From Kudoa neothunni (Eukaryota; Animalia; Cnidaria), in contig OZ199839.1 of the NCBI GenBank assembly GCA_964304625.1, positions 7,959,166 through 8,023,165 of the forward strand: DNA of 64,000 nucleotides, written 5' to 3'. The notes below the pieces were generated by a model that was not told the origin of the DNA, ran no database searches, and saw nothing but the letters and a program-made list of their open reading frames with translations. Made by a program: the position numbers and the translations under genes. This document shows positions 1 through 61,427 of the stretch, one piece after another. Position 1 is the stretch's first letter. The number at the start of each line of letters is the position of its first letter.

Positions 1-860
1 GGACAACTAATGGACAACAACCACAGAACGTACCGCCTTCAAATAAAAAAACCGGAATCACCTCATGCACACAACCTCCATTGTGCACTGATATTATATT
101 CAATGAAGGATACGAAGCAGACAAGGAATATGATGTTTTAGTTACGGCTGTTGGCAGATCTGTAGAAACTACCGTCGAAATACCCATAAGTAATAAAACA
201 CCTTATTCTAAATTAGTTAAATTTATATTTTAATTACGTTTTCAAAATTATTAAAAATATGTACAATAATTCTAGTTATACTAAATTTTAATGTAGATCC
301 ACAACCTACCCCCACTAATAATCCAATCAAATTAACCGTGGTGTTTACAAGAGAAGACAAAAACATAATAATTAAAACTTCTCTTCCTACTGGTGTCGAT
401 GAACAGTCGTTATGCAAATGGGAATTGAAAAATTGGGATGATCCATCAAAACCAATCGTCCAAAAATGCATGGCAACTGGTGAACAAGGTTGTTCTGTTT
501 TTCCATCGTGCAAGGAATTTACAATTTCCAATGTGGATAACACCAACAATTACCGTTTGATGTTGTATCATAGTACCAATAACAATATCTCTGGTTTTGT
601 CGAGATCCAGAAAGGTAATTGATTAAATATTATTGGTCATTATTTCTGATATTTTGATTAGATGATGAATCAAACAAATCCATGTAACATCAAGTTGTTA
701 AATTATAATTGATTTACTTTAGGTCAAAAAATACAATGTACTTATTGATGGAGATATCTTGTTAATCAATTATTTTAGAATTATTGCTGTAGTAGTTCCT
801 GCGCTCATCATTGTCGTTGGTGTGGGATTCTATTTCGGATATTGGAAAAATAAAAACTAG
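1..860 (+). CDS. Family A Cys-rich FN3-like type I membrane protein, copy A1 (3' part only)
   Basis: Exons <1-189, 297-614, 662-683 (22 nt), 723-737 (15 nt), 779-860 with GT-AG introns. The spliced end reads ...EIQKDDESNKSMSKNTIIIAVVVPALIIVVGVGFYFGYWKNKN*. Collinear with copies A2-A5. Confidence 0.88.
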
Positions 861-1982
861 ATTTTTATTTATGAAGAATTCTTTCACAAATTGATGTTCG
901 ATTTAGAGACAGGATTAATATTATATCATATGCATTAGTTATTTATCAGATTTCTTCATTACATACTTTTAACAGCATAATTATTTAGTTTAATGCAAAT
1001 TTATTTATTCGAAAATTGTATTTCTGTCTTGATTTTTTATTTATTTGGAAAAACTAAAACATAATTTTTTCAACGGTGTATTAATTGTTATTAGAAAATG
1101 ATAATAAATTTTTGTTATAAATTACTTCTTTTATCTTATGACAATTAGTAGAGCATGGTGCCTATTAAAACGGGTAAAATTTTTTGAAATAATATATTGA
1201 AGTACTTTTGATTGTAAATTAATTGTTTTGATCATAAAACCTAATAATTTATAATAAATTAATCATCAATTTATGAGCTAACCTAGAAATCCTATATTAT
1301 TTGTGTCATTTATAATTTAAATGATGTACTAAATAAATAGTTTGATGTAGAATGTATTTTTCATCGTATTGCCAAACAAACAAACAAATTAATTAGTAAA
1401 CATGAATACTCTCAATTGATTTTTGGTTTTTTGAATAAGCCTTTTAATTCCGAATATCATTATGGTTGGAAAATACGTTTAAACCTAGTTAATAATAAAT
1501 GTAGAATCCACCTGAAACGAGGCTAAATAATTTTTTTCATGATGCATTTTAATAAATATAACGAAACACGTTAGTATTATCAATACATATCAGGCAGTGC
1601 TTATTGCTACGGGAGGGAATAAATCCTAATCTAAGAACCCAGTTAAAGTTTGAAATTCACATTTGTAATTAATGATTTTTGTCCTAATATAATTAATTGT
1701 TTTGGAAAAAATTTGAGTTACTGATATTTCTAATATTATGACTATAAATTTCGTGCTTTATGTTTTGTTATGAGTAATGTTAAATACATATTTTAATTTG
1801 TTCCTAATAAAAATTTCGTTAACTAAAAAACCAAATATTAGACAATGTGTTTTAGGTATAAAAACGCCCATCCCATTACCTCTGATTGAACCTAATATGT
1901 TTAATCTAGCTCAGCTAATGTAATCTGTTAAAATATGTTTATCTATGTTTTTATAAAATGAAATAATTGTATTAGTTATATA

Positions 1983-2030
1983 CAGTAAGGTCTCGATATT
2001 ACGAGGTTCGATATAGGATAGTCGATATTT
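1983..2030. mobile_element. pogo/Tigger-like terminal relic
   Basis: TA|CAGTAAGGTCTCGATATTACGAGGTTCGATATAGG resembles pogo-type TIRs. Related ends occur at about 4540-4610 (reverse) and 32650-32690. No transposase is seen. Confidence 0.35.
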
Positions 2031-5358: not shown

Positions 5359-8266
5359 ATGAAAAACTTTATCCACCTTTTGGGAATTTGTACTTTTCTG
5401 TCATGTATATACACATACGACTAAAAATATTACTAATAACGTATAGCCTACTTTTCTCTTATATACATGAAAACGGCCGGGGGAGGTGCTTCAAGTCCAG
5501 TTTCTACTGAAATCCCTTTAACTTATAAACTTGTAAAAGATACAAGTGGATTGAAACTTAATTTGGTACTAAGTGGAGCGGATTATACTGGAGATAATAA
5601 TTGTCATATTAAACAATCCAACAAAGATGACACAGATCTTAATGAAATTAATGCATGTGCTGGTCGTGTTGAAGGCGGAGATAATGCCAAATGTGTTTGG
5701 ACATGCTCAGGACGTGAAAATAAATTAAATTTTGACAAGTCTTCTTCTAGTGCAAAGTATATTGCCGTTTTCACACATACTGCTGCAACGACTGCTGCAG
5801 ATAAAAATAAAGGTGGAATTGTATTTGGATTAGAGCTGCGTAATTAAAGCATCAGATATTTACAGTAAATTTCACTTAGCATTATTGGTCGATCCGCAAG
5901 TTACAATAACGACAAACGGCCAAAAACTAAAACTGAGTACAAAAACTTGTAAACCGGTGAACTGTCCCATATTTTATAAGGGTGTTCAATATAAGACCGG
6001 AACAGTTAAAACAAGTTGCACTGAAAATAATGAAAGCGAAATGGAGTTTAATTTGATGATTCCACATTATGAAATGAAATGTGATAATTATCCCAGTTTC
6101 TTTTACAAACTGCAAAATAAATATACTCTACTAAACATTGGTATTTATCAACCATTATATTATGTGACCTCTATTTCGAGTGCTACAACGAAATATATGC
6201 TAAATTTTACAAATAAATTTCCTTTCGAAATATGTCTTTTCAAAATAAAAGAGGTGCCAACAACTGGCGCTAACAATGTCTACACATCAAAATGTGGTTC
6301 AACAAATAAATGCTATGCACCTTGTAATAACGTAGAACTTGAACTCACCACTCCCACGTCTATTGTTGAAATATTGATTCAAACCAGGCACGTACCAATG
6401 ACCATCAATGGCGCCGAATATCCTGGGTATATTCAGAAAAAATTCGGTAATCCAAAAACATTTTAACTTTGATAAACTTCTTATAGTTGTCACAGGAACT
6501 ACTGCTCCTACCTTATTGTCAGAACACTCATCTACTGGTGTTACGCTAAATGTTCCGTTGTTCAAGCCAGAGAAGGATCATAAATTTGAGGGATGTACAG
6601 TAAAGTATTACGAAGCAGATAAACCTGAACCAACTTCTCCTGAAGATGCGAAATGTGGGGCAACCGGTGGAGGATGTGGAACAGGATGCACTGCTTCTCT
6701 AGAGATTACAGGGCTTGGTGGTGGAAAACCATATATTCTTGAAATTGCAGCAGGCAATACCGATAGTCCTCTTAGCGGCTTAGTAGAACATATATTCTTT
6801 CGAACAGGTAATATGATACAAATAAATATTTTTTTCTTAATAAATATATAGCAAAGAAATCTGATTCTACCTTTTCTGAAACAAATCCAACAGTAACGGA
6901 TACAACTGCATCAATTAAAGCAATAGAGGATAGCGAAACACTTAACGCACAAGACAAGACTTGTGCTTACTATATAAGCCCTCATGGAAAGGATGTATAT
7001 GTGCGTGCCATATGTGAAGATAGTTATCCTTGCAGGGGTTTTTGCAAGGATTCTCAAAAAATTATTGGGTTAATGCCCGGAACTGATTATGACCTAAAGG
7101 TAGTTGCACATGAGGATTATGGAGAAAAAGAATATAAAATTACAACGAGTATATAAATAATTGACCTCGAATTATATAATTAACTTTCTTTTAAGCATTT
7201 TCAACGCTTACACTCCAATCTCAATTTTTGGAAAAAGGCTTCAAAGTGACAGGTGTACTTTCAACACCATATCCTACAGCTGTTTGTCACTATAAAGTAA
7301 ACGTAAAAAAAGGGAATGAATCAAAGTTGGTCTACCAATGCCCACCATTGGCTTCTACAACAAACATTGGCCCATCCTCTAATGCATCCAAGACTTCTAA
7401 AATAGCGATATCTAGGGCAACTAATGGACAACAACCACAGAACGTGCCGCCTCCAAATAAAAAACCAGAAATCACTCCATGCACACAACCACCATTATGC
7501 ACTGAAATTATATTCAGTGAAGGATACGAAGCAGACAAGGAATATGAAGTGTTAGTTACGGCTGTCGGCAGATCTGCAGAAACTACCATCAAAATACCCA
7601 TAAGTAATAAAAAATCTAATTCTAAATTCGTATCGTTTATATTTTAATTACATTTTTAAAATTATATACATTAATTTTTATTATACTAAACTTTAATTTA
7701 GGCCCACAGTCCATCCCCACTAATAATCCAATCAAATTAACTGTGGTGTTTACAAGAGAAGGCGAAACCATAAAAGTTAAAACTTCTCTTCCTACAGGCG
7801 TTGATGAGCAGTCGTTATGCAAATGGGAATTGAAAAATTGGGATGATCCATCCAAACCAATCGTCCAAAAATGCATGGCAACTGGTGAACAAGGTTGTTC
7901 TGTTTTTCCATCGTGCAAGGAATTTACAATTTCAAAATGTGGATAATACTAACAATTATCGTTTGATGTTGTATCATAGTACAGATAGCAATATCTCTGG
8001 TTTTGTTGAAATCCAGAAAGGTACTTGAAAAAATGTTACTGGTCATTATTTCTGATAATTTGATTAGATGATGAATCAAACAAATCCATGTAACATCAAG
8101 TTATTAAATTATAATTGATTTATTTTAGGTCAAAAAATACAATGTACTTATTGATGGAGATATCTTGTTAATCAATTATTTTAGAATTATTGCTGTAGTA
8201 GTTCCAGTGCTCATCATTGTTGTTGGTGTGGGATTCTATTTCGGATACTGGAAAAATAAAAACTAG
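5359..8266 (+). CDS. Family A type I membrane protein, copy A2 (+1 frameshift in exon 7; pseudogene or sequence error)
   Basis: Exons 5359-5404, 5447-5839, 5880-6446, 6487-6807, 6852-7148, 7196-7603, 7702-8020, 8068-8089, 8129-8143, 8185-8266; all introns GT-AG. Signal peptide MKNFIHLLGICTFLSSYFSLIYM. Exon 7 is 319 nt instead of 318 (extra A at 7934-7937). Confidence 0.87.
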
Positions 8267-11474: not shown

Positions 11475-11501
11475 AATGTTCGAATTTTATGTTGATTTTA
11501 A

Positions 11502-16117: not shown

Positions 16118-16562
16118 ATCTAATGGATCTCATACTTTAGATATGAAAATAATTTGTTTTACGTATACAAAATCTGTTGAACTTTATCTAAAATATTAAC
16201 TTATACAACGTAATTTTATAAAACGATCAATGCCATGAGAATCATACATCCTTGTATCATTTTGATTGTAAATACGTGGACGGGTATTATGCTGTGAAAA
16301 ATTGTTTACATTTGATTCCCTTCTGATTATTTAGAATCTATCTAATTTCCGTGATATTTCTTTCAATTAATGTTCATGGTAATAAATTACTGCCCGTCAA
16401 AATATTTGAAGGATGAATTAATACTTCCGAAATATTTGTATTTATGCTTCATTAAGTTTAAGTCGAACAATAATTCTGTGTATATATACGAATTATAATC
16501 CGATCAAATTTTGATTTTCATATTGAACGACAACTATCGTTCAATATCTTTTGCAAAATATA

Positions 16563-19478
16563 ATGAAAACCTTTATCCACCTTTGGGGAATTTTTATCTT
16601 TCTGCCGTGTATATATACGCATACAACAACCAACATTACTAATAATATATAGCTTACGTATCGCTTATAGACGCGCAACCGGCCCAGGGAGTTGCCTCAA
16701 ATACAGTTTCTACTGAAGGCCCTTTAACTTACAAACTTGTAAAAGAGACAAGTGGATTGAAGATTAATTTTATATTAAGTGGAACCGATTATACTGGAGG
16801 GAAATATTGTCATATTAAACAATCCAACAAAGATGACACAGATCTTGCCGAAATTACATCATGTCCTGGTAGTGCTGCAGATGTATCTAGTAGTAAATGT
16901 GTTTGGACATGCGATGGAATTGAAAATAAATTAACTTTTGACAAGTCTTTTTCGAGTGCAAAGTACATTGCTGTTTTTACGAATACTGCTGCTACCACCG
17001 CTGAAACGAAAAATAATAATGGGGCTGTATTTGGATTGGAATTTCGTAACTAACGCATATAATATTTTCCATCATTTTCTTTTAGCGTTGTTGGTCAATC
17101 CGCAGATTACAATAACGAAACACGACAAAAAACTAAAATTGAGCACAAAAACTTGTACACCGGTGAAATGTCCGATATTTTACAAGGATGTAAAATACCA
17201 GGAGGGAACAGTTAGGGGAAGTTGCACTGAAAATATTGAAAGTGAATTGGAGTTTAATTTGATGATTCCACATTATGAAATGAAATGCGATAATTATCCT
17301 AGTTTCTTTTATACCCTGCAAAATAAATATACTCTATTAAACATTGATATTTATCAACCACAATATTACGTGACCTCTATTTCGAGTGCTACAACGAAAT
17401 ATATGCTAAAGTTTACAAACAAATTTCCCTTCGAAATGTGTCTTTTCAGTATAAGAGATAAGTCAACGACCGAAAGTAACAATGAATACGAATCGAAATG
17501 TGGATCGGAAGGGAAAAAATGTCATGCACCTTGTAATAATGTAGAACTGGAATATACGGCTTCTAAGTCTGTTGTTGAAATATTAATTCAAACTAGGCAT
17601 GTATCGTTGGCTAAAAGTGCTAACAAATATGATGGATATATTCAGAAAAAATTCGGTATTTTATGGATATTTACTCATTTATAACCTTCTCCTAGTTGTC
17701 ACAGAAACTACCGCCACTCCATTATTGTCAACATACTCGCCTACTGGCGTTACATTAAATGTTCAGTTGTTTAAGCCAGATAGTGCACCTAGTTTTTCGA
17801 GTTGTACTTTAACTTATTATGAAGCAGACAAACCTAAACCTGCTTCTCCTGAAATCCGAAATGTGAAGATGACAGTCAAACCTGTAGAACAGAGTGCACT
17901 ACTGCTCTAAAGATTACCGAGCTTTCTAATGGAAAACCATATATTCTTGAAATTGCAGCAGGAAATGGTAATGATATTCCTGCTAATTTTAAAGAACATA
18001 TATTTTTTCGAACAGGTAATATAATATAAAAAAAAATTTTTTAATAAATATATAGAAAAGAAACCTGGTTTTATCTATTCAACGACAACTCCGACAGTAA
18101 CGGATACAACTGCATCAATTAGAGCAATAGATAATAGCGAAGCACTCAACGCACAAGACAAGACTTGTGCTTACTATATAAGCCCTCATGGAAAGGATGT
18201 ATATGTATGTGCCATGTGCGAAGATAGTTATCCTTGCAGAGGTTTTTGCAAGGATTCTCAAAAAATTATTGGGTTAATGCCTGGAACTGATTATGACCTA
18301 AAGATAGTTGCACATGAGGATTATGGAGAAAAAAAACACAAAATTACAACGAGTATATAAATAATTGACCTCGAATTATATAATTAACTTTCTTTTAAGC
18401 ATTTTCAACGCTCACACTAAAATCGGAATTTATAGACAAAGGCTTTAAGGTGATAGGTGTACTGTCAACACCATATTCTACAGCTGTTTGTCACTATAAA
18501 GTAAACGTAAAAAAAGGGAATGAATCCAAGTTGGTCTACCAATGCCCACCATTGGCTTCTACAACAAACACTGGCCCATCCTCTAATGCACCCAAGACTT
18601 CTAAAATAGCGATATCTAGGGCAACTAATGGGCAACGACCACAGAATGTGCCTCCTCCAAATAAAAAAACAGAAATCACTCCATGCGCACAACCACCATT
18701 ATGCACTGAAATTATATTCAGTGAAGGATACGAAGCAGACAAGGAATATGAAGTTTTAGTTACTGCCGTCGGTAGATCGGCAGAAACTACCATCGAAATA
18801 CCCATAAGTAATAAAACATCTAATTCTAAATTCATATCTTTTATATTTTAATTAAATTTTTAAAATTATTAAAAATATGTACATTAATTCTTATTATACT
18901 AAATTTTAATTTAGATCCACAACCTTCCTCCAATAAGAATCCAATCAAATTAACTGTGGTGTTTACAAGAGAAGGCGATAACATAAAAGTTAAAACTTCT
19001 CTTCCTACAGGCGTTGATGAACAGTCGTTATGCAAATGGGAATTGAAAAATTGGGATAATCCATCCAAACCAATCGTCCAAAAATGCATGGCAACTGGTG
19101 AACAAGGTTGTTCTGTTTTTCCATCGTGCAAGGAATTTACAATTTCCAATGTGGATAATACCAACAATTACCGTTTGATGTTATACCATAGTACCAATAA
19201 CAATATCTCTGGTTTTGTCGAGATCCAGAAAGGTAATTGATTAAATATTATTTGTCATTATTTCTTATATTTTGATTAGATGATGAATCAAACAAATCCA
19301 TGTAAACTAAAATTGTTAAATTCTAATTTATTTATTTTAGGTCGAAAAATACTATGTACTTATTGATGGAGATATTTTATTAATCAACTATTTTAGAATT
19401 ATTGCTGTAGTAGTTCCAGTTCTCATCATCGTTGTGGGTGCGGGATTCTATTTCGGATACTGGAAAAATAAAAACTAG
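16563..19478 (+). pseudogene. Family A type I membrane protein, copy A3 (-1 frameshift in exon 4)
   Basis: Exons 16563-16608, 16653-17045, 17086-17655, 17696-18015, 18056-18352, 18400-18807, 18915-19232, 19280-19301, 19341-19355, 19397-19478. Exon 4 is 320 nt instead of 321 (GAA-ATCCG at about 17853). The gene is otherwise intact, so this may be a sequence error. Confidence 0.8.
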
Positions 19479-19777
19479 ATTTTTATTTATGAATAATGCT
19501 TTCACAAATTGACTTACTGTTTAGCGACAGTACTAATATTATATCATATGTATTAGTAATCCATCAGATTTCTTCATTACTTACTTTTAAATTCATAATT
19601 ATTTAGTTTCATGAAAATTTATTTATTCGGAAATTGTATTTCTCTATTTTTTAATAAGGGAAATTAATATGATTTTTTCATGATATGAATACTTTATTTA
19701 ATAGTAATAATCAACCTTTTTGGATGTATTATTTTATCTTATTACTAGTTAGTTGCAAATCCTGATATCCGTTAACC

Positions 19778-21142
19778 CAGGGATTCTCAACCGGGGCAAA
19801 ATATAAATGATATGGGGTAAATTAAATGACATCAAAATTAGGCAGGGTGAATTTTTGCATTATGGATTTGTGACGTATTTCCAGACTTCTCACGAATTAT
19901 ATTATTCAGGGAAATTAAACTCAATAAGAATTGGGAAAAAATTCTTAAATTATTTTTAGGAATAAGTTCTTAACATTTATTTATAAAATTATTCCCAGTC
20001 CTTTTTAACGCCTCGTTTATCTTTTAGTGGTGTAGCTTAATAATAATACTTAAAATGACTATTCTCATGATAAATAATATTCAAGTGTCGTTAGTTTTGA
20101 CTATTTTTAATTATTTCTAGTCCGTAAGAGCGAAGGATTGGGGAATAATTAATTTGATTTAGCAATATCTAAAGAATAAAATCTGTATACAGATTGTGGG
20201 TGAGTTGATGGGATTAAAAATTGTCATTATGCAAGCATACGTGTTTTTTAGGACCAGAATTTACCCCTCAAATAAACTCTGTTGTATCTGAACGAGTACA
20301 AAACCTCAAGGCGGCGTTTCTCAATTTTTTTATCGCGCCCCACTTCTTAAAAAGAAGTTAAGCATCTAATCTCTTTCAAAAGTATTGATTTTTTACTTAA
20401 ACTGACGATAATTTTGAATAAAACTTCCAACCACATAAAAATTTGAAAGCAATTAATATTTACATCTTATCTCATTAAAATTAAAATGTATTCGATCAGA
20501 TCTGATTTAATTTATCGATGGACCTAATAAATGAACATCTTTAGTTGTTCATTCCGTCCAAAACAGCATCAAGTGAGACTCGTGGAAATCCAACCTTCAT
20601 TAAGAAATACTTTGGTGTATACAGAGCTAATGGGCCGAAAATAAATAGTATAAATACAAAATCAATCAATATTATATAGGTTTAATCAAAAAAATGGATA
20701 TATGATTCTAAATGAGACAAGATTGAGGTTTAAACCATTCTGATTCTATTCGGATAAGAGCACGTTAAATATTTTTATTCATTTGTATATAATTGATCAT
20801 TGCATTTCATATTTTTTATGATATTAATCGCCACTCAATAATCAGCAATATCGAAAATCGCGATATTGGCTTTAAAGTACGTCATACTGCCAAATTATCT
20901 CACCACTATCCATGTCACACCAATACTCAGGATTTTCCGCGTTACAGCAGAGTGGTTCATTAAACATTCAAAAATTTCGATGTCACACCAAAATTTTTTC
21001 ATACCCACCGGTAGGGCGTGGAAATCACGTTGGGGAACATTGCTTTAAGGTAAATAAGGATTGAGCTTTCAAGTTAGAGGGTAATTTTAGATTTTTCATC
21101 AGACTCAAGGGGTAAATTTGAATAAATGGTTGAGAACCCCTG
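19778..21142. mobile_element. Non-autonomous hAT element
   Basis: TIRs CAGGGATTCTCAACC / GGTTGAGAACCCCTG; imperfect 8-bp TSD CGTTAACC / CCTTAACT. Confidence 0.8.
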
Positions 21143-21148
21143 CCTTAA

Positions 21149-23425
21149 CTCATTCCGGGTTTTCATCCCCCTTTCGGTCCTTCATTATTGCCTCTCCAAT
21201 AATGGTAATAATTCGTCAATGAATATTATTTCAATATATCACGTAATTATCCATTAGGAATGTAATTAAAAATTAAGATCCAATTATAAATTTATATCTT
21301 TCGAGATTACGTACTATACAATAATTATGGTATACTGGGGTAGAAAAAGAAGACTAATTACTTAAAAATAGAAAATTTAGAATTAAAAAGATTAAATAAA
21401 TGATATTGTTTCAAAATTTGTCAAATCGTCATTGGAGGAAAAGAAACATAAGCAACATAGTGCGGTGCCCGAAAGGGAACGAAGAACCACCAGCGTGCAA
21501 AATTTCAATTAGTCTGTTACTCAGCTTTGTACTTACAACGCTATAATGAGATACACAAATTTAATTGATGTCATCTATGATAATTAAAATGATGATGATT
21601 TTCTAAACCCATTTGATATGGTGACGTTACCTCCAGAAATGTTGATATTTTGGCTGATGAAGAAGGTCCCTTTGTTTCAAAAGATTGTGACAACATTGAC
21701 ATTGGAACCGTTCCAGAAATATGCGGTACAATAGAACTTTCTCGTATATTCATAATGAACCATTAAATGATAATGTTTGTGCCACATGGTGTAAAATATC
21801 TCAATCAGATGATTCATCTGTAATTATCACTGAATGCCTACCAGTTCCTCAAAATAAATATACTATTATGCACGATGACTCAGTCATTAGATATGAATCC
21901 TACGAAACATTCTTAAAATTTTTCGATGAAAATTTTCTCTTACATATTGTTAGAGGCATAATTACGCACAACAAAAGAATGATCACACGTTTCACTTAAC
22001 CATAAAAGAACTTCAATTTTTTATTAGTATTTTATTATTATCGGGCTACAATCAATTATCTCAGCAACATATGTACTGGGAACTTCAGTGGATTCTGGGG
22101 TTGAAATCGTAAAATGGTTGATGACCTATAAAAGATTCTAGTTGATAAAACGACATCTCCACTTTAATTATAATTCAAAACACGATACAGACGATAAGCT
22201 GTTCAAGACCAATAATTCGAAAATTGAACGAAAATTTGGATATTTCCACGACAATTTGTCTGTTGATGAACAGATGGTTCCATATACTGGTCACCATTCC
22301 TGAAAAATGTAAATAAAGGGAAAACCCATCCGTTTCGGTTTCAAGAAGTGGGTTTGGCATCTTCTGATGGATATGTGAATAGTTTTAGTGTATACACAGG
22401 TAAGAATGAAATATACAACAAGAATTTTGGCCTAAGTAGAAGCATCGTATTAAATTTTGTCGATGAGCTAGAGGATAGAGGTATTTCCCGTGTCTACTTC
22501 GACAATTTCTACACCTCTTACAAATAATTGGCTGAATTGAATAGAATAGAAGAGTTGTTAATGCTATTGGAACAGTGAGGTTGAACCGAGCATCGAACGG
22601 TCCCTTGACGACTCCGTAATTAATGAGTAAAAACCACCGAGGCTACCATGAATATTTCAAAGATTCTACAAATGAATCAAGTGTATTCAATGGAAGGATA
22701 CGAACACTGCTACTCTTCTTAATAACTTTCTTACTATTGAACCAATCCAAAATGTGAAGCGTTACTGCAGAACAAAAAAGCGCCATGTATCGATCGTGCA
22801 GCCTCAAATTCGTCGTATGTACAACAAGTACATGGGTGGTATTGATACCGTAGACAATTACTTATCTTGCTACAGAATAAGAATTCGCTCGAAAAATTAA
22901 TTCATGAAGAATGTTTAATTATAAAAGCCAAGAGAAAATCATCTTATTAAATCACGTTAGATACATCGCAGCTAATTTGATCAGTATAGATGATTCTGAA
23001 AAACAAACCCCTCGATCATCCATCGTAAATATTCATGTGCGTCATTGTGCAGTCGACCTATGATGAGTACTAATGCTGAGAAAAAGAGACGATGTGTTGC
23101 ATATAAAAAAGAAGACCATCTACTTTTGTCAAGATTATCAAAATTATATTCGTGCTAAATGTTCGATAGATTTTCATAATCAACAATAATTTGCTCTCTT
23201 ATCGATATGAAACCGTTTATTTTTCGCACGTTTTGTGACACAACGTTTATTCAGAAAATCGCACGCCTGTGGGTTTTCGTTCCCTTTACGGCCTCTTGGT
23301 AATTTTACCGTTTTCCTATAAAAATTTAATTTTTAATTAATAATACTTTAACGTAGCAATTAAAAGATTATTTTAAACGTTTATTTCCAATTTTAAGGAA
23401 ATTAAAATATTGAACCCGGAGTGGG
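21149..23425 (+). mobile_element. Decayed piggyBac element
   Basis: TTAA|CTCATTCCGGG...CCCGGAGTGGG|TTAA. Broken transposase with LSVDEQMVPY, KPIRFGFKKW, VYFDNFYTS and YNKYMGGID motifs. Confidence 0.85.
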
Positions 23426-24621
23426 TTAACCCTTCCTGCCCCTGGTGGGGTATTTGCCATACCCGATAGAAATATTTTTTGTTTTACTCAGAGCACGAGA
23501 ATTTTTTCTCTGTAGAATTTTTAGAATGCTCCTACAAACTTATAAGGCTTTCATTTAAGAAAAAAATTTGTATTCGAAATTTTATAAACTAAAAATTATA
23601 CATTTTTGCAAATCGAGAAATAATTATTTCTTGTATAATGTACAATGTACCGCAAATTTGTATTTGTATTTAATATATACTTTAACATCATTTAATAATT
23701 AAGACTCTTATATTAATGACCGGAAAAAACATGTTTTCATCAAAGTAAAACTGATTGGGTATTTACCAAAGTTAATTCGATAATACTTTACTAATGTGAT
23801 GACTTGCACGCAGTCTCAATTTGTATAAATTTTACATTCGTTGAGGTAACTTCTTGTTTTGAATTGATTAAAAAAACTTTTTAAAAATTAAGGAAACTTT
23901 TGGGATCACATTTAGTATAAGCTCCTAATCCTCAAATACATAATGGGGATTATTGTTTATTACGCCGTCATGTATGAGACTAGACCAAAAATTTGTCCTT
24001 ACAATTTTTGAGGAAATTTTGATTCGTTACAGATGATGAGAGCAAATAAGATTTTTCGAGACCATTTTTGACAAAAGAAATTGAAAAAAAGCGTTAAAAT
24101 TGGGGGCCACAAGCTCCACAATTACCCGTAACTTCAGCCAATTGTTGTTGTTATTATTATCGCGCGTTTAACCCTCCTTCATTTTCAAATAGATATCTAT
24201 TCTTTAATTTAAACCAACTCGATTTCTGCAATTATCTATAATACTCACGCACAAGTGGATCCAAACCAGGGGGAGACTTAATCCATTTATTCCGATAAAA
24301 TAAAAAGGGCCAGGAACTTGTGATGTTTCTCATGAGCAACAATGTTTGCTAATAATTATGTATTCTTATGTTACGACCATATTGATTGATTCATTCATTC
24401 ATGTGGTTTAAATCATTGTTTGGTTGAAAAATAGGGGGATTGGTTGGTTGTACGCTCTTGTAGCTGCACTTTATTGTAGTTGCAATATTATCGTTTTATT
24501 TATTACAAAGGATAGAACAATTTCTCAATGTTAACGTCTATTAATATATATGTTCATGATAGTTTACATTATGTAGGCTCCGAAGGATTTAAAATTGACT
24601 AAGGCATATTTTTGCTGGGGT

Positions 24622-25708
24622 GGCTAACGTTTACCACATCCCAACACTCGGGTTTTTTGGTTACCTAGGTCATTTGGCTCTCAATAAACCACGAATGCTT
24701 CCCGCTATTTATTCAACTGATAATCTAGATGAACTAAACTTTGAAGAAATAATAAATTTCAAAGATAGGAAGGATGAACTGTTGAAAATTTTAATTGAAA
24801 TTGGACTTTTTATTAGAGAAGGAATATAAAATTGTGGATGTAGCATGATCATGGCGATTCGACCACGATATTCAGATGGATACAGTTTCAGATGTCATAA
24901 TCGTGGTTGCCTAAAAGAACTATCTGTCAGATATAATAATTTCTTGTACCAATCGAAACTCTCATATCGCATTTTAAAAATTATATATCTGTGGTGAAAT
25001 GAAATGCAGAGCCAACGTAACCTCATGAAAGAATGCAGACTAGAGTCCACCAGGGCAAGATACGACTGGAAAAATTTCATGCGAGGCTTATATCTGAGCT
25101 ATTATATCATGAACCCCACTAAAATAGGCGGACCCGGAATAAAGATGCAAATTGTCGAAAGTCAAATTTGCAAAAGAAAGTTTCATGTTGGAAAGATTTT
25201 GCAAATTCAAAGTGTATGGATTGTCGGAGGTGTTGATGAAAACGGAGAGGTTTCCATGGTTCAAACTGAAATTAGAGATCAGCGGACATTAGAAGGGATT
25301 ATTCTTCAATATGTTAATCAGTGTTCAATAATACACACCGATGGATGGCCAACCTACGAAAACTTAGAATAGATTGGATACCAGCATGACGTAGTGATTC
25401 GTAAGTATGAATTCGTCAATGCCACTGGCATTCACATTAACAGAATTGGAAGTTTGTCGGTAGCTTTAAACGTAAGTGTAGGAGTATAACAAACAAGAAA
25501 AAAGAGATGATTTCATCCTATATTTCTGAGTGGTGTTTTAAGAGAGGGCACAAAAATTAAATATTTTCTGAATTTATAAATGTAACAAAATTAGTTTTTA
25601 ATTTTGAGGGTTAAAATGTACAGTTTTCAGTCTTTATGTTTTGCGTGGCATTTTGTTGATATTCGAGAACGAACAATCCAAGTGTTGCGGATGTGGTAAA
25701 CTTTAGCC
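24622..25708 (+). mobile_element. Merlin (IS1595/ISXO2-like DDE) transposon, inactivated
   Basis: About 30-bp TIRs GGCTAACGTTTACCACATCC / GGATGTGGTAAACTTTAGCC. The transposase has KIGGPG..QI.ES, VWIVGGVD and SIIHTDGWPTY motifs, interrupted by stops. Confidence 0.88.
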
Positions 25709-26709
25709 TGAAGGGTCGTAAGCATTAAGCTTAAGAATAATATTGTCCAAATGATGGGTCGGGGACATTTGGAGAGAATCAAGAATTTTCATTCTTTGAA
25801 AGATAAAATGGATATCACGTCATATTGTAAAAGAATGTTCAATGGGAAAAACAGATAACCTAAAATCCTCAATTATTATAGCTGGACATCTCCATCCTCC
25901 TTAATATGATTTTGGGTAATGAAGAATCCATTATGATGGCTCATAATGAAATGAGAACTACAAATAACCACAAAACATTAAAAAATTAAAGTAAGGCCTC
26001 GATATAGCGGAATTAATGATTTTTCGGTGCTTTCCAACATAAAAAATTCAACAAATAACGTTAACTAGTGCGAACGGTAATGCAGGAATATCCACCTCTA
26101 AAAATCCGTCTTTTGTGCGCGCCCCCTTCTGATTTTATAATAAATCGTCTGTTTACAATTTTTAAATATGGGATGATCACAAATATCAGTTTAAAAATAT
26201 CAGTTTAAAAAATCAACCAAAATACAGCTTCGGCCATTATTGTAGCACGCGCTCAACTTTGCGCGTCCTCTTTTTTTGTTGTATTTCCCTAAGTTTCCAC
26301 ATATATAAACAACTTTGAGATGATTATTATCTCCTATCTAGTCCTGTTATAGTATTTTTGTGTAAAACCCATATCTAACTCAGTAGTAATAGATTTAGAT
26401 AATTTGTTTGAATTTAAATTAACTTTTTCCCGGACAGAATTCTAAATATTAAAAGTTTTGTTGATTAGAAATGTCAAAACCAACTAACTTTAGTTTATCT
26501 AATCTTCTTAGTAGTTTATTTTTTAATGGTGCGAGATATTGTGATATTACTATGACCATAATATTTCCTATATTTGTAATACATTAGAAACTTATGAATT
26601 ATTTAATAAATTATTGTACATGGAAAATACAATAACTGGAATGATACGTTTGTAATTGTAATAATTGCTTTTGTATAAGAAAGTTATACCATGATCTTTA
26701 GTTCTAGAC

Positions 26710-28202: not shown

Positions 28203-28208
28203 TTTTAG

Positions 28209-33599: not shown

Positions 33600-36466
33600 C
33601 TAGTTTTTATTTTTCCAGTATCCGAAATAGAATCCCACACCAACAACAATGATGAGCACTGGAACTACTACAGCAATAATTCTAAAATAGTTGATTAACA
33701 AGATATCATTATCAATAAGTACATTGTATTTTTCGACCTAAAATAAATAAATAAGCATTCAAAAATTTTATTTTACATGGATTTATTTGATTCATCATCT
33801 AATCGAAATATCAGAAATAATGACCAATAATATTCATTCAATTACCTTTCTGGATCTCGACAAAACCAGTGATATTGTTATCCGTGCTATGATACAACAT
33901 TAAACGGTAATTGTTGGTGTTATCCACATTTGAAATTGTAAATTCCTTGCATGATGGAAAAACAGAACAACCTTGTTCACCAGTTGCCATGCATTTTTGG
34001 ACGATTGGTTTGGTTGGATCATCCCAATTTTTCAATTCCCATTTGCATAACGACTGTTCATCAACGCCTGTAGGAAGAGAAGTTTTAACTTTTATGTTAT
34101 CGCCTTCTCTTGTAAACACCACAGTTAATTTGATTGGATTATTAGTGGCGGTAGGCTGTGGATCTAAATTAAAATTTAATTAAAATATGAACGATATGAA
34201 TTTAGAATTAGATGTTTTATTACTTATGGGTACTTGGATGGTAGTTTCTGCAGATCTGCCAACAGCCGTAACTAAAACTTCATATTCCTTGTCTGCTTCG
34301 TATCCTTCCTTGAATATAATTTCAGTGCATAATGGCGGTTGTGCACATGGAGTGATTTCTTTTTTTTTATTTGAAGATGGCACATTCTGTGGTTGCTGTC
34401 TATTAGTTGCCCTAGATACCGTTATTTTAGATGGTTTAGATACGGAAGAAGGTGTCCCAATCTTTGTTGTAGAAGTCGGTGGTGGGCACTGATAGACCAA
34501 TTCGGATTCTTGCCCTTTTTTTACGTTTACTTTATAGTGACAAAAAGCTGTAGGATATGGTGTTGACAGTACACCTGTCACTTTGAAGCCTTTTTCTATA
34601 AATTCCGATTGTAGTGTGAGCGTTGACAAAGCTTGGAACAATATTAGATATATAATTCGAGATCAATTATTTATATACTCGTTGTAATTTTGTATTCTTT
34701 TTCTCCATAATCCTTATGTGCAACAACCTTTAGGTCATATTCAGTTCCAGGCATTAACCCAATAATTTTTTGAGAATCCTTGCAAAAACCCCTGCAAGGA
34801 TAACTATCTTCGCACATTGCACACACATATCCATCCTTTCCATGAGGGCTTATGTAGTAAGCACAAGTTTTGTCGGATTTTGTGATTGTTCCGCTTTCTC
34901 CTATTGCTTTAATTGATGCAGTTGTATCCGTTACTGTTGGAGTTGTTTCAGAAAAGGTTGGACCAGATTTCTTTGCTATATATTTATTTTAAACAATATT
35001 TTTTTCGATTATATTACCTGTTCGAAAGAATATATGTTCTTTAAAATCATTAGACATACCATTCGAATTCGGGGCTGCAATTTTAAGAATATATGGTTTT
35101 CCACTATCCAATCCTGTAATCGTAAATGCAGCACCACAATTCGCCTCACAGTCTATTTGGCCAGTTCCGCATTTTGCCTTTGCATCAACTGCAGGTTTAG
35201 GTTTGTCTGCCTCATAAAAAGTTACAGTACAAGTAGCAAATCTAGGTTCATTTTCTGGTTGAAAAAACGGAACATGTAGCTTAACACCAGTAAGTGAGTG
35301 TGTTGACAATAAGGTAGGATCGGCAGATTCTGTGATAACTATAAGAAGAATATAAATAAATAAAGCTTCATGTAATACCAAATTTTTTCTGAACATATCC
35401 GTCAAACGTGACGTCATTGATGGTCAATGGTAGATGTCTAGTTTGAATCAATATTTCAACAATAGATTTGGAGTCTTCAAATACGAGCTCAACATTATTA
35501 CAAGGTGCATAACATTTATTCGTCGATCCACACACTGATTTGTATTCATTGTTACTTGCGGATGCTAACACTTCTCTTACACTGAAAAGACATATTTCAA
35601 ACGGAAATTTGTTTGTAAACTTTAGCATATACTTTGTCTTCACATTCGAACTATAGGTCACGTAATATTGTGGCTGATAAACATCAAAATTTAATAGGGT
35701 GTATTTATTTTGTAGGTTGTAAAAGAAGCTGGGATAATTATCGCATTTCATTTCGTAATGTGGAATCATCAAGTTAAACTCCATTTCACTTTCAATATTT
35801 GTAATGCCACTTCCCCCAGTTGTTCCCTCATCATATTTCACGCCCTTGTAAAATATGGGACATTTCACCGAGTTACAAGTTTTGGTGCTAAATTTCAGTT
35901 TTTGGTCTTTTTTTGTTATTGTAACTTCCGGATTGACCAATAATGCTAAGTGAAATTTACTGTAAATATCTGATGCTTCAATTACGCAACTCTAATCCAA
36001 ATACAACCCCACGATTATTTTTTGCTGCAGCGGTTGCTGCTGTATTATCCGTAAAAACGGCAATATACTTTGTTTTCGGAGAAAACTTGTCAAAACCAAG
36101 CTTATTTCCACTTCTTGAGCATGCCCAAACACATTGGTTAGTATTTGTTCCTTCAACATCACCAGGGCATTCGTTAATTTCAACAAGGTCAGTGTTTTCA
36201 GTATTAGATTTTTTGATATGGCAATTTTTCCCCGAAACATAATTATTTCCACCTAATATCAAATTAACCTCTAATTGATTATTCTGTTTCAAAAGTTTGT
36301 ATTTTAAAGTATTTTCAGTATCAGCTGAATTTGGAGCATCTCGTTGGGCCACTTCTGTACTCATGAGCGGAGTGGAGGCTATATATAATTAGTTATATTT
36401 TTTGTGATTTTTATATATACATGAGAGGAAAGTGAAAATTCCTAAAAGGTAGACAAAGTCTTTCAT
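33600..36466 (-). CDS. Family A type I membrane protein, copy A4 (intact, about 822 aa)
   Basis: Minus-strand exons 36466-36421, 36378-35986, 35945-35379, 35338-35018, 34975-34679, 34631-34224, 34163-33846, 33798-33777, 33737-33723, 33681-33600. These give an open 2469-nt frame from signal peptide to TM and WKNKN*. Confidence 0.9.
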
Positions 36467-47509: not shown

Positions 47510-50428
47510 ATGAAAGCTTTTGTCTACCTTATGGGAATTTGTTCTTTATTATCATGTATATATCCAACTTCCAAAGAAATATTAATAATAACTTATAGCC
47601 CCTTATTTGCTTATATACACTCAAGGAGGTCAGGAAGATTCTCAAAATCCAGTTATTACTGAAGACTCTCTAACTTACAAACTTGTAAAAGCAGATAGTG
47701 ATTTTAAGGTTAATTTAATATTAAATGGAAATGGCTATCGCCCGGAGAAAAAGTGTCATATCAAAAAATCTAATGATGAAGAAACGAATCTTGTTGAAAT
47801 AAGCGAATGCACTGGTAATAATCTCAGCACGGATAATAGCAAATGTGTTTGGACATGCTCAGTAAGTGAAAATAAGCTTGGTTTTGACAAGTTTCCTCCG
47901 AGGACAAAGTATGTTGCCGTCTTTACGGATAATGAAGCAGGAACTGCAGAAACAAAAAATAGTGGTGGGGCTGTATTTGGATTAGAGTTTCGTAATTAAA
48001 GCATCTAGTATATTCAGTAAATTTTCTCTAGCATTATTGATCAATCCGCGAGTTACAATAACAAAGGAGGACAAAAAACTGAAATTTAGCACAAAAACTC
48101 GTAACTCGGTGAAATGTCCCGTATTTTACAAGGATGTGGAATTTAAAGAAGGAACATCTGGAAATACCTGCAATCATAATTGTGAAAGGGAAATGGAGTT
48201 TAATTTGATGATTCCATATTATGAAATGAAATGCGATAATTATCCTAGTTTGTTTTACAACCTGCAAAATAAATACACCCTATTAAATTTTGATGTTTAT
48301 CAACCACAATATTACGTGACCTATAGTTCGAGTGAGCCAACGAAATATATGCTAAAGTTTACAAACAAATTTCCATTTGAAATGTGTCTTTTCAGTATAA
48401 GAGATCCGTTAACAGAAATTACAGAGGCAACTACCGACGATTACACATCTAAATGTGGTTCGACAGGGAAAAAATGTTATGCACCATGTAATAATGTTGA
48501 ACTTGAGTTTTCGGCTTCCATTTCTGTTGTTGAAATATTGATTCAAACCAGGCACGTATCGTTGGTTAAAAGTGGCATCAAATATAGTGGATATATTCAG
48601 AAAAAATATGGTAATCCAAAAACATTTTAACTATGATGATCTTCTTGTAGTTGTCATTGAAACTACTGCTCCTACCTTATTGTCGGAACATTCATCTACT
48701 GGTGTTAAGTTAAATGTTCCCTTGTTTCAATCACAAACTAGTGTTAAATTTTCTGGATGTACTGTAACTTATTATGAAGCAGATAAACCTAAACCTGCTT
48801 CTGCTCCAACGGCAAAATGCGGAGGCGCCAATCAAGATTGTGATGCAACGTGCACTCCCGCTCTAACGATTACAGAACTTGGAAGTGGAAAACCATATAT
48901 TCTTGAAATTGCAGCAGGCAATACCGCTAATCCTCCTCAAGATTTCAAAGAACATATATTCTTTCGAACAGGTAATTAATAGAAAACAAATATTTTTCAA
49001 AATAGGTGTATAGAGAAAAAAGGCACTTCTACCTTTTCGGAAACAAAACCAATTGTGAAGGATACAAATGCATCAATCAAAGCAATAGATGTAATTGGTA
49101 CAATTACACATGAAGACAAAACTTGTGCTTACTATATAAGCCCTCATGGAAAGGATGTATATGTGTGTGCCATATGTGAAGATAGTTATCCTTGTAGGGG
49201 TTTTTGTAAGGATTCTCAAAAAATTATTGGGTTAATGCCCGGAACCGAATATGACCTAAAGATAGTTGCACATGAGGATTATGGAGAAAAAAAACATAAA
49301 ATTACAACGAGTATATAAATAATTGACCTCGAATTAAATAACTAATTATGTTTCAAGCATTTTCAACGCTCATACTACAATCGGAATTTATAGAAAAGGG
49401 CTTCAAAGTGACAGGTGTACTTTCAACACCACATCCTACAGCTGTTTGTCAATATAAAGTAAAAGTAAAGAAAGGGCAAGAATCCAAATTGGTCTATCAG
49501 TGCCCACCACCAGCTTCTACAACAAACACTGGCCCATCCTCCAATGCACCAAAAACTTCTAAAATAGCACTAGCTAGGACAACTAATGGACAACAACCAC
49601 AGAACGTGCCGCCTTTAAATAAAAAAACCGGAATCACCCCATGCACACAACCTCCATTGTGCACTGATATTATATTCAATGAAGGATACGAAGAAGACAA
49701 GGAATATATAGTTTTGGTTACGGTTGTCGGCAGATCTGCAGAAACTACCATCAAAATACCCATAAGTAATAAAACATCTAATTCATATCGTCTTACTTTG
49801 GTTGAGTTTTTAAAATTATTAAAGATATGTACATTAATTATTATTATACTAAATTTTAATTTAGATCCACAACCTTCCTCCAATAAGAATCCAATCAAAT
49901 TAACTGTGGTGTTTACAAGAGAAGGCGAAAACATAAAAGTTAAAACTTCTCTTCCTACAGGCGTTGATGAACAGTCATTATGTAAATGGGAATTGAAAAA
50001 TTGGGATGATCCATCCAAACCAATCGTCCAAAAATGCATGGCAACTGGTGAACAAGGTTGTTCAGCTTTTCCATCATGCAAGGAATTTTCAATTTCAAAT
50101 GTGGATAATACCAACAATTACCGTTTGAAGTTATACCATAGTACCAATAACAATATCTCTGGTTTTGTCGAGATCCAGAAAGGTAATTGATTAAATATTA
50201 TTTGTCATTATTTCTTATATTTTGATTAGATGACGAATCAAACAAATCCATGTAACATCAACTTGTTAAATTATAATTGATTTATTTTAGGTCAAAAAAT
50301 ACTATGTAATTATTGATGGAGATATTTTATTAATCAACTATTTTAGAATTATTGCTGTAGTAGTTCCAGTTCTCATCATCGTTGTGGGTGCGGGATTCTA
50401 TTTCGGATACTGGAAAAATAAAAACTAG
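47510..50428 (+). CDS. Family A type I membrane protein, copy A5 (intact, about 826 aa)
   Basis: Exons 47510-47555, 47599-47991, 48032-48610, 48651-48971, 49014-49310, 49358-49765, 49865-50182, 50230-50251, 50291-50305, 50347-50428, giving an open 2481-nt frame. FN3-type motif GLMPGTEYDLKIVA; TM IIIAVVVPVLIIVVGAGFYFGYW. Confidence 0.9.
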
Positions 50429-50727
50429 CTTTTTATTTATGAAGAATGCTTTCACAAATTGACTTACTATTTAGAGACAGTACTAATATTATATCATATG
50501 TATTAGTAATCCATCAGATTTCTTCATTACTTACTTTTAAATTCATAATTATTTAGTTTCATGAAAATTTATTTATTCGGAAATTGTATTTCTCTATTTT
50601 TTAATAAGGGAAATTAATATGATTTTTTCATGATATGAATACTTTATTTAATAGTAATAATCAACCTTTTTGGATGTATTATTTTATCTTATTACTAGTT
50701 AGTTGCAAATCCTGATATCCGTTAACC

Positions 50728-52093: not shown

Positions 52094-52099
52094 CCTTAA

Positions 52100-57713: not shown

Positions 57714-58979
57714 CAGTGTGTTCCCTACGGGGGATGCGAAGAGCCATCGTTAGGGGGGTGGGAGTCATTCAAGAATAAATTTAACAATTAATCTTAGTTT
57801 ATTCATTTCGTATTGTTCGTTAGCCCCCGTTTAAATCATGTAAGGACGTAATGCGTATGGTAATATTTCTGGTTGTTTCGATTCAAAATGGGATTTGATA
57901 ATTTATTTAATTTATAATTCATTCTGTTTGATTCTACGAAATAGCGCAGTAAGGTAATAGTTTATATTATGCATGTTCAGCGTACAAAATCTAACTATCG
58001 CTATTTTCATGTAAAATAGTTACTTTGATATCTTTCAAAATAACATATTTATACGCTCTAGCTGTACTTAGGTTGTCAGCATTTTTATCTACTTAGGAAT
58101 AAACTATATCCATAAAAATAAAACCACGATGTAGTTATAACTTTGTCTCCTGTCTAAATTTGAGATCTATCATTTAATTACGTTGTTTTTATTGTTACAT
58201 TTTAAGTTTTACTTTAAAATTTTTACCTTGCCTCTGATATAAATATAAGTTAAATTGTTCTTGAAAGTATAGGTAAAACAAGGATCAAAGCATTCATTTA
58301 TATACATCAATAAACGAAAACAAATTTTAACAATATATTAGTTATTTTATTCGAGTATATTTAGAAGGCATATTTTTTGAATTTTCGGAATTTTTCTTAA
58401 CCTACTGCCTCAAAATTTATATTAAAATATGATTCAATATAGAATAAGGAATTCGCTAGGTTTTTCTATACAAGATGGTATATGAGACAAGCTTATAGAC
58501 TTCATTATATGCAAATAATAATTATCGGAATTCATTAATCCCCGAAAACGATTTTCATGTTTCATATTCCTACAAAATGTCCTGCATTGAATTACTGATG
58601 AAAACTCAGCGGAAGTTAGAGAACCGCCCGATCAAATAAATGCTGAATAACAATTGATTTTGAAATAATGTTTCTTGTGAACAATACGAATCGGCTATTT
58701 TTATTTGACTCATTTCATTTTTACCTTTAAGCACAGGACTTATTTAAGCGACCATACTGTTTATAGTTCAGTATTACGTTTATATTTATTTTTGACGTCT
58801 AATATTTTGGAATAATTGTAATAACATTATTTATTACTTTACATAAAAATGGTATATATAAGCGGGAATGAATAATAGCTCCAATCATTGAGTGTTAAAT
58901 CATGAGGAGCGAAAAGATAATGTCGTCCATTTTCGATTATACATAGCAAGTTGAGTTAACCAAAACATTTTGGTTTTAA
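57714..58979. mobile_element. Truncated non-autonomous hAT (duplicate of 26710-28202)
   Basis: Left TIR CAGTGTGTTCCCTAC is present; the right end is removed by the deletion at about 58980. Confidence 0.65.
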
Positions 58980-59165
58980 AGTAGAAAAGTTTGTAGTTTT
59001 CGTTTTAATGCTATTTATCGGCTCTCAATTGTATTGTTGAAATGTTATTCAGTCTTATAGTTCGTGCTTCAATTACCTTGTTTCGTACCTATTGACATCT
59101 AGAGTCAAATTCATTATTATAATTTCTATTAAAATTAATAACGCCATTATAATTGAGAACCAAAA

Positions 59166-61427
59166 ATGTTGGTCATTGCATTGTTAATCCTTTCTCTCTG
59201 TTACAATGGTAAAATAAGCCGGGAGTGGGATTATCCATAATAGATATATTTAGCCCACTCACACAAATACTACGTTCAACGAGATCAAACCGAATTAGAG
59301 GATACAATCCATCTAAAACTTGAAGGAGTTTCTGGAAGTAAATGCAACGTTCAATTGTTGGAAAGAAACGAATTTTTCTATCACTATATTGGGAGTGAAT
59401 CTGAAGGAAAACAACTTAAGGATGTCCCTTGTGTCGGAAAATACACTATTCTAACTGGAGCTGCGTTCCCATTTTATTATGTACAGATAAGATCCGAATA
59501 TGCAACTGAAACTCTTAAAATAATCCATAGTAATTCAATTTTTTGAATATTTTTTCTTAATTTTCTTGTAGTCACTGACAGTATTCCTCAAACTCAATTT
59601 AAAGTAAACGAAACCTCAATCGAATTCACCACTAAAAATGTCTGCAGTCATCCTCAAACTTGTAAACTAACAAGTGGTGACAAAGTCCTGGATGAGTTCA
59701 CTCCAACCTCTGAAACCGAGTGCAACACTGAAACCAAGCTCACCGGATTTTTTGATTCAATTGGCGATTCAGTCGAACTCTCTTGTGGTATCAATCAGCC
59801 AAAAATACACATGTATAGAAAAAATAATATGGCCATGGAGTTCAGTCCATTGGACAAACTTCCCTATCACATTGTTAAAGGAGATGCGGATAATAAGATA
59901 AAAATTGTTTTCGACGAAGATATGCAAGATGAAATATGCAAATTTGAAATTAATAAAAAGGATGGTGGAGCTCTGATATCAAAGTGTTCTGCCCCAACGA
60001 GTGAAGATAATTGTTATCAACTCTGCACTGACGTTGTAATGGACTTAACATTTAATAAGGATTCGGAAAAAGATTTTAAAGTTAAAGTATCGACTAGAAA
60101 TCATACAGGAGTAGAGAAAACTTTAAGAAGTAAAATCCTTGTTTAAATAATTTTATTTAAACGTCAATTAGTTGACAAAAGTAACCTAGAAGTTACTCCG
60201 AAAGAAACTAATGCAACTCTTTCTATCGCGGCCCTTAAAGATACAGATTTGACCTCTGCATCTTGTTCCATCGAGTTGAGAAAGCAGGAATTCCCTAAAT
60301 TCAATATTGGCGTGAAATGCAATGCCGATTCGAAGACGCTATGCCCTACAAATTGTGAAAATGTTACCATTCTTGATCTCGAGCCAAACACAAAATATAT
60401 CGTGAAAGTAACTTATACTAAAAATAGTGAAAGTACTCCAACCTATATTTCAGAAAAGTTATTTAAAACAGGTAATAAATAAAAAGTAATTGATCTAAAA
60501 TTTAATTAAGCTGACTACAATATAACGCAATTGCCTGAGATTAAAGCATATTACGAGCACGTAAAAATGACTGTAGCACCGAACGTGGCTCTGTTTGACA
60601 GAGTATACTGTAAAATTCAACAAAAAATGGTGGGCGAAACTGCTTTCAGCCCATCTGAATGCGAAGAATCGGTTGATTGTTCAGGTTTATGTGGACAACC
60701 ACTCACTATTAAAAACCTTTTTCACGATACTGAATACGAATTTAAATATTTATTTGGAAAGTACGTTAGTGACCTTGATAAAAACAAGGTGACAGTATCG
60801 ACAAGTAATGTACAATATTAATCTCTCAATAACATTTATTAAGTTGCAACGCTTCAAAAAATCAATGTTACCCACACATGGAATAACACCGATTTGATAG
60901 TCACAACGACAATGGAGCAGATGGACCCAGACCAAATTTGTGATTTTACATTTGCCCAAATAGTAGATGGAGTTGTCAAATATACTTACGGATTATATGA
61001 TAAAACTACTGGATGGGAGGGGAAATGCAACCAAGAAATAACCTTTTACAACACTGCTTCCTACAGAAGGGGCTCAATGAAAGTACAGGCCAGATACGTT
61101 AGTGAGCCGATCGTTGTGAGCCTTTGGGCTGGAGGAAATGAGGATAATTTTGATCCAAACTTTCCAGAAACTGGTAAACAAGGTAAATAATATTATATAA
61201 ACATTAATTATAATCCATTTTAGGCACTTCGAATAGGTAAGATAGTTTATGTTAGAGTATTTAATTAACTACTAACTTTAATTTAGCGCTAATGTTGGTG
61301 GAACCAAAATTCTGTAATATTATCTGTTCCCATACAGCTCTAATGATGATTTAGGTTGATTGTTGGTGGCGTTTTAATGGCACTGATGGTTTTCGCTATT
61401 GTTTTCTTGGTTTTGACAAAGAAATAA
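59166..61427 (+). CDS. Family B Cys-rich FN3-like type I membrane protein, copy B2 (intact, about 640 aa)
   Basis: Exons 59166-59208, 59254-59529, 59572-60129, 60172-60471, 60511-60804, 60844-61182, 61224-61236 (13 nt), 61287-61313 (27 nt), 61355-61427, giving an open 1923-nt frame. Signal MLVIALLILSLCYNAHS; FN3 motif ILDLEPNTKYIVKV; ends KILLIVGGVLMALMVFAIVFLVLTKK*. Confidence 0.9.

Follow-up and report, generated by a model that had tools for sequence, protein, structure and literature searches.

Gene content and architecture

The subject of this work is a window of 64,000 nucleotides (nt) from the genome of the myxozoan cnidarian Kudoa neothunni (GenBank assembly GCA_964304625.1, contig OZ199839.1, positions 7,959,166 to 8,023,165 of the forward strand; positions below are those of the window unless prefixed with C2, the sequence on which it lies). 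The window holds seven genes of two families, A1-A5 and B1-B2, with conserved exon plans, which encode predicted single-pass surface proteins built from fibronectin type III (FN3)-like domains. A first-pass annotation, made from the sequence alone, had proposed this number of copies and this division, and rebuilt splice models bear out both.

1..860, + strand: 3' portion of A1, from the end of exon 6 through exon 10; the remaining 5' sequence is outside the window, on the upstream side
5359..8266, + strand: A2, 10 exons; single-base assembly indel in exon 7
16119..31893, + strand: first copy of a segmental duplication (A3 ... B1); partner at 47041-61828 (A5 ... B2)
16563..19478, + strand: A3, 10 exons; single-base assembly indel in exon 4
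28203..28555, + strand: what remains of the final exon of a subfamily C gene, a type usually placed just upstream of B
29232..31494, + strand: B1, 9 exons; single-base assembly indels in exons 3 and 5
33600..36466, - strand: A4, intact, 822 amino acids (aa)
36466-36421, 36378-35986, 35945-35379, 35338-35018, 34975-34679, - strand: A4 exons 1-5
34631-34224, 34163-33846, 33798-33777, 33737-33723, 33681-33600, - strand: A4 exons 6-10
47510..50428, + strand: A5, intact, 826 aa
48651..48971, + strand: A5 exon 4, predicted four-Cys FN3 domain, modelled; exon positively selected
50230..50305, + strand: A5 micro-exons 8 (22 nt) and 9 (15 nt), juxtamembrane stalk
59166..61427, + strand: B2, intact, 640 aa; variable block formed by the second half of exon 3 and exon 4

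Family A genes have 10 exons, comprising a signal exon, six domain exons (seven domains, two of them in exon 3), micro-exons of 22 and 15 nt and a transmembrane (TM) exon, and their products of about 820-826 aa end in KNKN. Family B genes have nine: the signal exon is followed by five exons that together encode six domains, then by two micro-exons (13 and 27 nt) and a TM exon, and the products of 639-641 aa end in TKK. Each protein has one hydrophobic segment, at its C-terminal end, followed by a basic tail of 2-4 aa. The layout that the first-pass annotation ascribed to each complete model (signal peptide, 6-7 domains, one TM helix and a minimal tail) stands in these respects, with the signal peptide of the A and B proteins called by eye, although in the assembled window the reading frame is unbroken only in A4, A5 and B2. 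GT-AG introns, mostly of 39-51 nt in a genome of ~30% GC, occupy the same places in 22 of the 22 copies of the surrounding cluster, the exception being intron 1, which is lost in A6 and A10; in these two genes an in-frame deletion between short direct repeats took out the intron together with the first part of exon 2, and a fused signal-peptide exon resulted.

The intact models (822-826 aa in A) contain 3.3-3.6% cysteine, and most domains display the four-Cys pattern C-x16/22-C-x5/11-C-x3/5-C; the cysteines presumably form disulfides, and the proteins would be expected at the cell surface. In the first domain of A exon 3 (48032-48610 and paralogues), A5 and A8 have lost one cysteine and gained another nearby, possibly a compensating disulfide swap, and a different cysteine of this domain is lost in A4, A6 and A10. 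A exon 6 (7196-7603 and paralogues) carries a Pro/Ser/Thr-rich insert of 46 residues in the loop between the second and third cysteines, a loop of 5-11 residues in the other domains. Profiles of the two families match one another at corresponding domains (second domain of exon 3, about 1e-8; exon 4, 3e-6; exon 5, 8e-6), which shows A and B to be paralogues, and they are old ones.

Family size and gene integrity

The window is part of a larger cluster, of which 229 kb were rebuilt (C2:7955500-8184499) to give 15 A and 7 B genes, the 22 being a lower bound. The published assembly comprises 40.2 Mb (N50 12.0 Mb) in three chromosomes and a mitochondrial circle, with 30.41% GC, 49-nt introns and one TAAACC telomere (PMC12239612); C2, of 12,040,071 bases, bears the only (TAAACC)n array of the genome, at its end. 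A profile of A and B exon 3 returned at least 150 matches (401 candidates), spread over the three chromosomes and with few exceptions stop-free, the weakest among the matches listed having an E-value of 6.5e-51. With a distant homologue as query, at least about 66 further loci were found at 50-61% identity, and B exon 3 retrieved subfamily C along with other groups. The hand union of the three match lists places the superfamily at about 300 loci across all three chromosomes, a figure to be read as a rough lower bound on loci and not as a tally of intact genes; some dispersed copies contain stops. As such, the single diversified locus proposed at first pass is indeed clustered, but the proposal understated the extent of the family, which represents a major share of the very reduced gene set of this animal (5,316 predicted proteins; PMC12239612).

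Subfamily C encodes six B-like domains followed by a Thr-rich stretch and a stop, and because no TM exon is seen before this stop its products are possibly secreted. All 11 C hits among the matches listed lie on the same strand as a B gene and 2.2-5.2 kb upstream of it, examples being found near C2:8099.9k-8101.9k and near C2:8152.5k-8154.5k. Two B copies with C partners (C2:8180580-8182872 and 8196168-8198460, 15.6 kb apart) have identical query scores and may represent a recent duplication or an assembly duplicate. For the array as a whole, an origin as haplotype duplication was ruled out, since its copies are 10-20% different and have rearranged neighbours.

Frameshifts occur in 15 of the 22 cluster copies (one or two single-base indels in each of A1, A2, A3 and B1), nearly all of them single-base and mostly within homopolymer runs; an X was placed at every break when these copies were read. 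No nonsense substitution was seen in the 22 genes. In A9, which has nine breaks, seven of the nine frameshifts are absent from contigs of four same-sample runs, breaks in exons 2-3 among them; over those exons the closest paralogue known differs by 13-18%, and apart from the breaks the contigs reproduce A9 exactly. Being missing from same-sample contigs, these seven frameshifts are consensus errors of a low-coverage assembly (about 7-fold k-mer coverage; PMC12239612), and the indels in A1, A2, A3 and B1 are probably assembly errors as well. A graveyard of pseudogenes is ruled out by the absence of nonsense changes together with the A9 read contigs.

Predicted fold and homologues

The FN3-like nature of the domains, suggested at first pass, is supported by structural modelling of A exon 4 (pLDDT 73), for which the top 50 structural matches are all FN3-containing chains (Z 7.5-8.6 over 80-93 residues; root-mean-square deviation 2.5-3.5 Å in most rows; Atlas TM-score 0.57-0.68), the first being an FN3 domain of sDscam, tied with generic FN3. 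The domain as modelled has the FN3 beta-sandwich fold. The model of A exon 3 is all-beta but of lower quality (pLDDT 55), with weak tandem-FN3 matches, and for the remaining domains the same fold is suggested by profile similarity. Pfam fn3 gives weak hits in 15 of 25 domains (best E 3.6e-4), none reaching the gathering score (A2 exon 5 attains 13.4 bits, against a cut-off of 25), and sequence support for FN3 is confined to the E-F strand motif, with its Leu...Tyr signature kept in several domains. The distal exon-2 domain has no Pfam or PDB match. The family thus resembles the FN3 superfamily (fibronectin, LAR, contactin, sDscam) in its predicted beta-sandwich and E-F motif, and differs from it in falling below the Pfam cut-off, in lacking the B-strand Trp, in its four-Cys pattern and in having no full-length match.

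Homologue searches were run exon by exon, and a profile search of 1.84 billion representatives matched 21 proteins. Each of the 20 that were looked up is a singleton, 19 of them unnamed Logan/ENA entries and one a named bacterial protein, which is repetitive and was judged a chance match. No named homologue emerged from profile, word, Atlas-feature, Pfam or PDB searches, and the first-pass view of a lineage-specific, diversified surface-protein family without a named relative is upheld. No papers on the family were found among the searchable literature, including that on Kudoa or myxozoan fibronectin proteins and on the accessions of the homologue samples, and it goes unmentioned in the Kudoa genome paper (PMC12239612); in searchable papers, the family is undescribed.

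The homologue contigs that were read derive from five samples, and those that are long enough keep the same exon order. An A-like and a B-like gene in SRR31175926 (17-23% GC) both close with micro-exons, a TM segment and a basic tail of few residues; of the two, the B-like gene groups with B and C (support 99/94, on a long branch). The SNF5 and S14 genes of this sample are 44% and 51% identical to their single matches in K. neothunni and are adjacent in both genomes, an identity and shared neighbourhood that mark the organism as distantly related and probably also a myxozoan; no family member was demonstrated to be a positional orthologue next to SNF5/S14. A double domain of exon-3 type is found in two outside contigs downstream of other domains and not near the start, which implies that longer, multi-unit members exist, and in SRR33849685 several domains share one open frame, so that some introns must be missing there.

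Diversity, recombination and selection

All diversity reported here is that among paralogues of one sample, and the term polymorphic, applied to the family at first pass, holds in this restricted sense. Across 15 copies of A, mean amino acid identity rises from the distal exons to the anchor (exon 2, 0.58; exon 3, 0.73; exon 4, 0.64; exon 5, 0.81; exon 6, 0.83; exon 7, 0.92; TM exon, 0.97), in agreement with the diverged distal exons and nearly identical exons 7-10 noted from the window. The gradient is, however, partly a product of gene conversion: synonymous divergence (dS) falls from 0.53 to 0.15 and intron divergence from 0.39 to 0.13 in parallel with the amino acid gradient, and as silent sites and introns share it, the 3' half of A is subject to homogenising conversion in addition to constraint. 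The nearest A paralogue switches between exons, approximately unbiased (AU) tests reject every cross-exon tree, the pairwise homoplasy index (PHI) gives z = -43, and recombination is significant within each exon; the copies are mosaics from gene conversion.

The variable distal region of A does not extend to B, in which the distal exon 2 (0.99) and the base (0.97-0.98) are nearly invariant and variation sits mid-protein (exon 3, 0.81; exon 4, 0.83). Four-fold sites differ at 0.28 in B exon 4 vs 0.008 in exon 5, and the adjacent intron 3 at 0.04, a pattern of old variant blocks surviving inside a homogenised gene. The segmental duplication within the window provides a further comparison, as its spacer has diverged by 5.8%, against 31% and 26% for exons 2 and 4 of A3/A5 and 23% and 19% for the second domain of exon 3 and for exon 4 of B1/B2.

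Site models (M2a vs M1a, own code) in A give twice the log-likelihood difference (2dL) as 51.0 for exon 2 and 46.3 for exon 4 and assign an omega of about 4 to 10-14% of the sites; exons 5-7 show no significant signal. In 56 neutral simulations with recombination (frequent tree switches), 2dL reached a maximum of 24.2; the signal in exons 2 and 4 therefore stands and that in exon 3 (19.8) falls. An apparent signal in B exon 3 (28.7), which depends on a gappy loop, was discounted. Positive selection beyond the recombination null is thus shown for A exons 2 and 4, and the outcome that the first-pass annotation had named as counting against its reading, dN/dS well below 1 throughout, does not hold. 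For distal A domains, a tree-free pN/pS of 1.40 [1.07-1.88] in the Cys2-Cys3 loops, as delimited by cysteine landmarks, vs 0.68 elsewhere (23 codons), is supporting rather than independent evidence, since the loop was picked after viewing the alignments.

Interpretation

Taken with these results, it is reasonable to postulate an immune-driven variant surface repertoire, a reading to which we give about even credence. On this account each protein would be a rod of 6-7 FN3-type domains, tethered to Kudoa cells by a conserved stalk and a single TM helix, with a tail too short for known signalling motifs. Copies would multiply through segmental duplication; gene conversion would even out the anchor (in B also the distal domain and introns) and reshuffle divergent exon blocks; and selection would favour new residues in exposed loops, chiefly the Cys2-Cys3 loop. 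The fish immune system is the likeliest driver, which would make the array a variant antigen coat, with subsets of the repertoire perhaps expressed by stage or clone; both the immune driver and any switching are presumptive. The short basic tail and micro-exon stalk kept in the distant relative also speak for this account, as judged from its contigs.

Protist variant antigens (Giardia VSP, trypanosome VSG, Plasmodium RIFIN/STEVOR) comprise hundreds of paralogues with a variable ectodomain, conserved anchor, minimal tail and recombination. The Kudoa family is comparable in size, layout and recombination-driven diversity, and has the feature of that class in a large repertoire diversified by recombination and positive selection; it differs in its FN3 scaffold, its multi-exon animal genes and the placement of copies along chromosomes, and shares no sequence match. 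In the myxozoan Sphaerospora molnari, 18 VSP-like, 27 RIFIN/STEVOR-like and 10 ETRAMP-like genes are reported and the expanded membrane proteins are proposed to serve immune evasion (bioRxiv 10.64898/2026.02.11.705288, in which fibronectin is never mentioned). VSPs are recognised there by a cysteine content of >10%, by CXC/CXXC motifs numbering >5 and by ending in [KR]X[KR]XK[KR]. The Kudoa proteins resemble the S. molnari families in their myxozoan origin and short basic C-terminus, and diplomonad and S. molnari VSPs in their single TM helix, short conserved tail and signal peptide (by inspection); with about 3.5% Cys, 0-1 CXXC, 0 CXC and no [KR]X[KR]XK[KR] end, they do not belong to the VSPs, of which those of Giardia were invoked at first pass. 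A more speculative matter is whether true antigenic variation exists in Kudoa and its myxozoan relatives, with clonal switching among about 300 FN3-scaffold genes that exon-block gene conversion has diversified; we consider it possible but rather doubtful. If true, switching would constitute a VSG/VSP-like system made by an animal from its own adhesion-domain toolkit.

Several observations weigh against a variant coat. The outermost domain of B is nearly invariant, as would be expected of a conserved binding function more than of a tip exposed to antibodies; the loops of B fail the tree-free test (pN/pS 0.76 [0.43-1.37]); and exon-wide dN/dS is below 1 everywhere (0.26-0.66 in A domains). The A/B split predates the split from the distant relative, which suggests distinct retained functions, and the many Kudoa stages that are intracellular may limit antibody exposure. 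No RNA run was found to hold family sequence, the contigs of matching runs are without spliced joints, and an upstream motif common to A, B and C was not found.

Some of these same points lend themselves to an adhesin or host-receptor-binding repertoire, in which FN3 loops would serve as variable binding surfaces, as they do in monobodies, with subfamilies for different fish and annelid tissues. Such a repertoire would accord with the FN3 fold and variable loops, the lack of a signalling tail, the invariant distal domain of B, the retention of old subfamilies across species and the fixed C-B gene pairs. Against it, shuffling among 15 near-equivalent A paralogues exceeds the need of distinct ligand specificities, and no RGD motif is present; we regard it as a tenable but distinctly less probable account. 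Its corollary, that host receptor evolution is the selective force and that copies are co-expressed by stage, seems similarly tentative. A variant coat and an adhesin can both exist, e.g. if A serves as variant antigen while B, whose tip is fixed and which is partnered by C, acts as adhesin.

Self/non-self recognition among parasite cells, through homophilic or paired-gene binding, has parallels in Hydractinia Alr, Dictyostelium TgrB1/TgrC1 and chelicerate sDscam. The Alr proteins, to which the first-pass annotation had also pointed, have V/I-set Ig domains, one FN3-like domain and often tails with immunoreceptor tyrosine-based activation or inhibition motifs (ITAM/ITIM), three tails being <14 aa; their FN3-like domain has Cys in strands B and E and lacks the EF leucine and F-strand tyrosine (PMC9546547). 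Like them, the Kudoa proteins are cnidarian, clustered and single-pass, with one domain per exon and FN3-like domains with unusual cysteines. Unlike them, they have 6-7 such domains and a tail of 2-4 residues without ITAM/ITIM; both modelled A exons (exon 3 weakly) match FN3, no V/I-set Ig domain being seen, and membership of Alr is not supported. Cnidarian ancestry, the Alr-like exon plan (PMC9546547), the same-strand pairing of every listed C hit with a B gene and the sDscam match, though tied with generic FN3, would favour recognition; about 300 dispersed, converting paralogues are not the few highly allelic loci it would call for, and we consider it improbable.

Neutral birth-and-death in transposon-rich segmental duplications, with variable loops merely unconstrained, would explain the position of the genes amid piggyBac- and ISXO2-type transposase remnants, the exon-wide dN/dS below 1 and the stops in some dispersed copies; it is largely refuted, and to our minds very unlikely, given the lack of nonsense changes in the 22 cluster genes, a selection signal in excess of the recombination null and a divergence in the variable exons that is 3-5 times that of the spacer duplicated with them. 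Least probable of all are host-receptor mimics or decoys (e.g. cytokine-receptor-like) that damp fish immunity, for although exon 3 has weak Foldseek matches to cytokine-receptor ectodomains (E about 1e-3, TM-score about 0.3) and secretion of subfamily C is possible, the Foldseek matches reflect generic tandem FN3 and come from the low-quality exon-3 model, and the WSxWS motif and signalling tail of class I cytokine receptors are absent.

The molecular basis of antigenic change in myxozoans has been described as unknown. The family supplies candidate surface antigens and host-binding proteins, by which antigenic variation in an animal parasite becomes directly testable, and where it is conserved, as in exon 7 of A and in exons 2 and 5 of B, it offers possible diagnostic or vaccine targets in fish disease.

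Mobile elements in the window

Sequence of piggyBac-type transposase (PF13843) lies at 62402-63658, 9577-11142 and 45056-45364, as one open frame of 418 aa and two broken copies. ISXO2/IS1595-like transposase remnants, with weak Pfam matches, occur within the duplicated spacer at 25004-25372 and 55992-56360. An inverted repeat of 280 bp, 89% identical (11501-11779 / 12918-13198), probably represents the ends of a DNA transposon.

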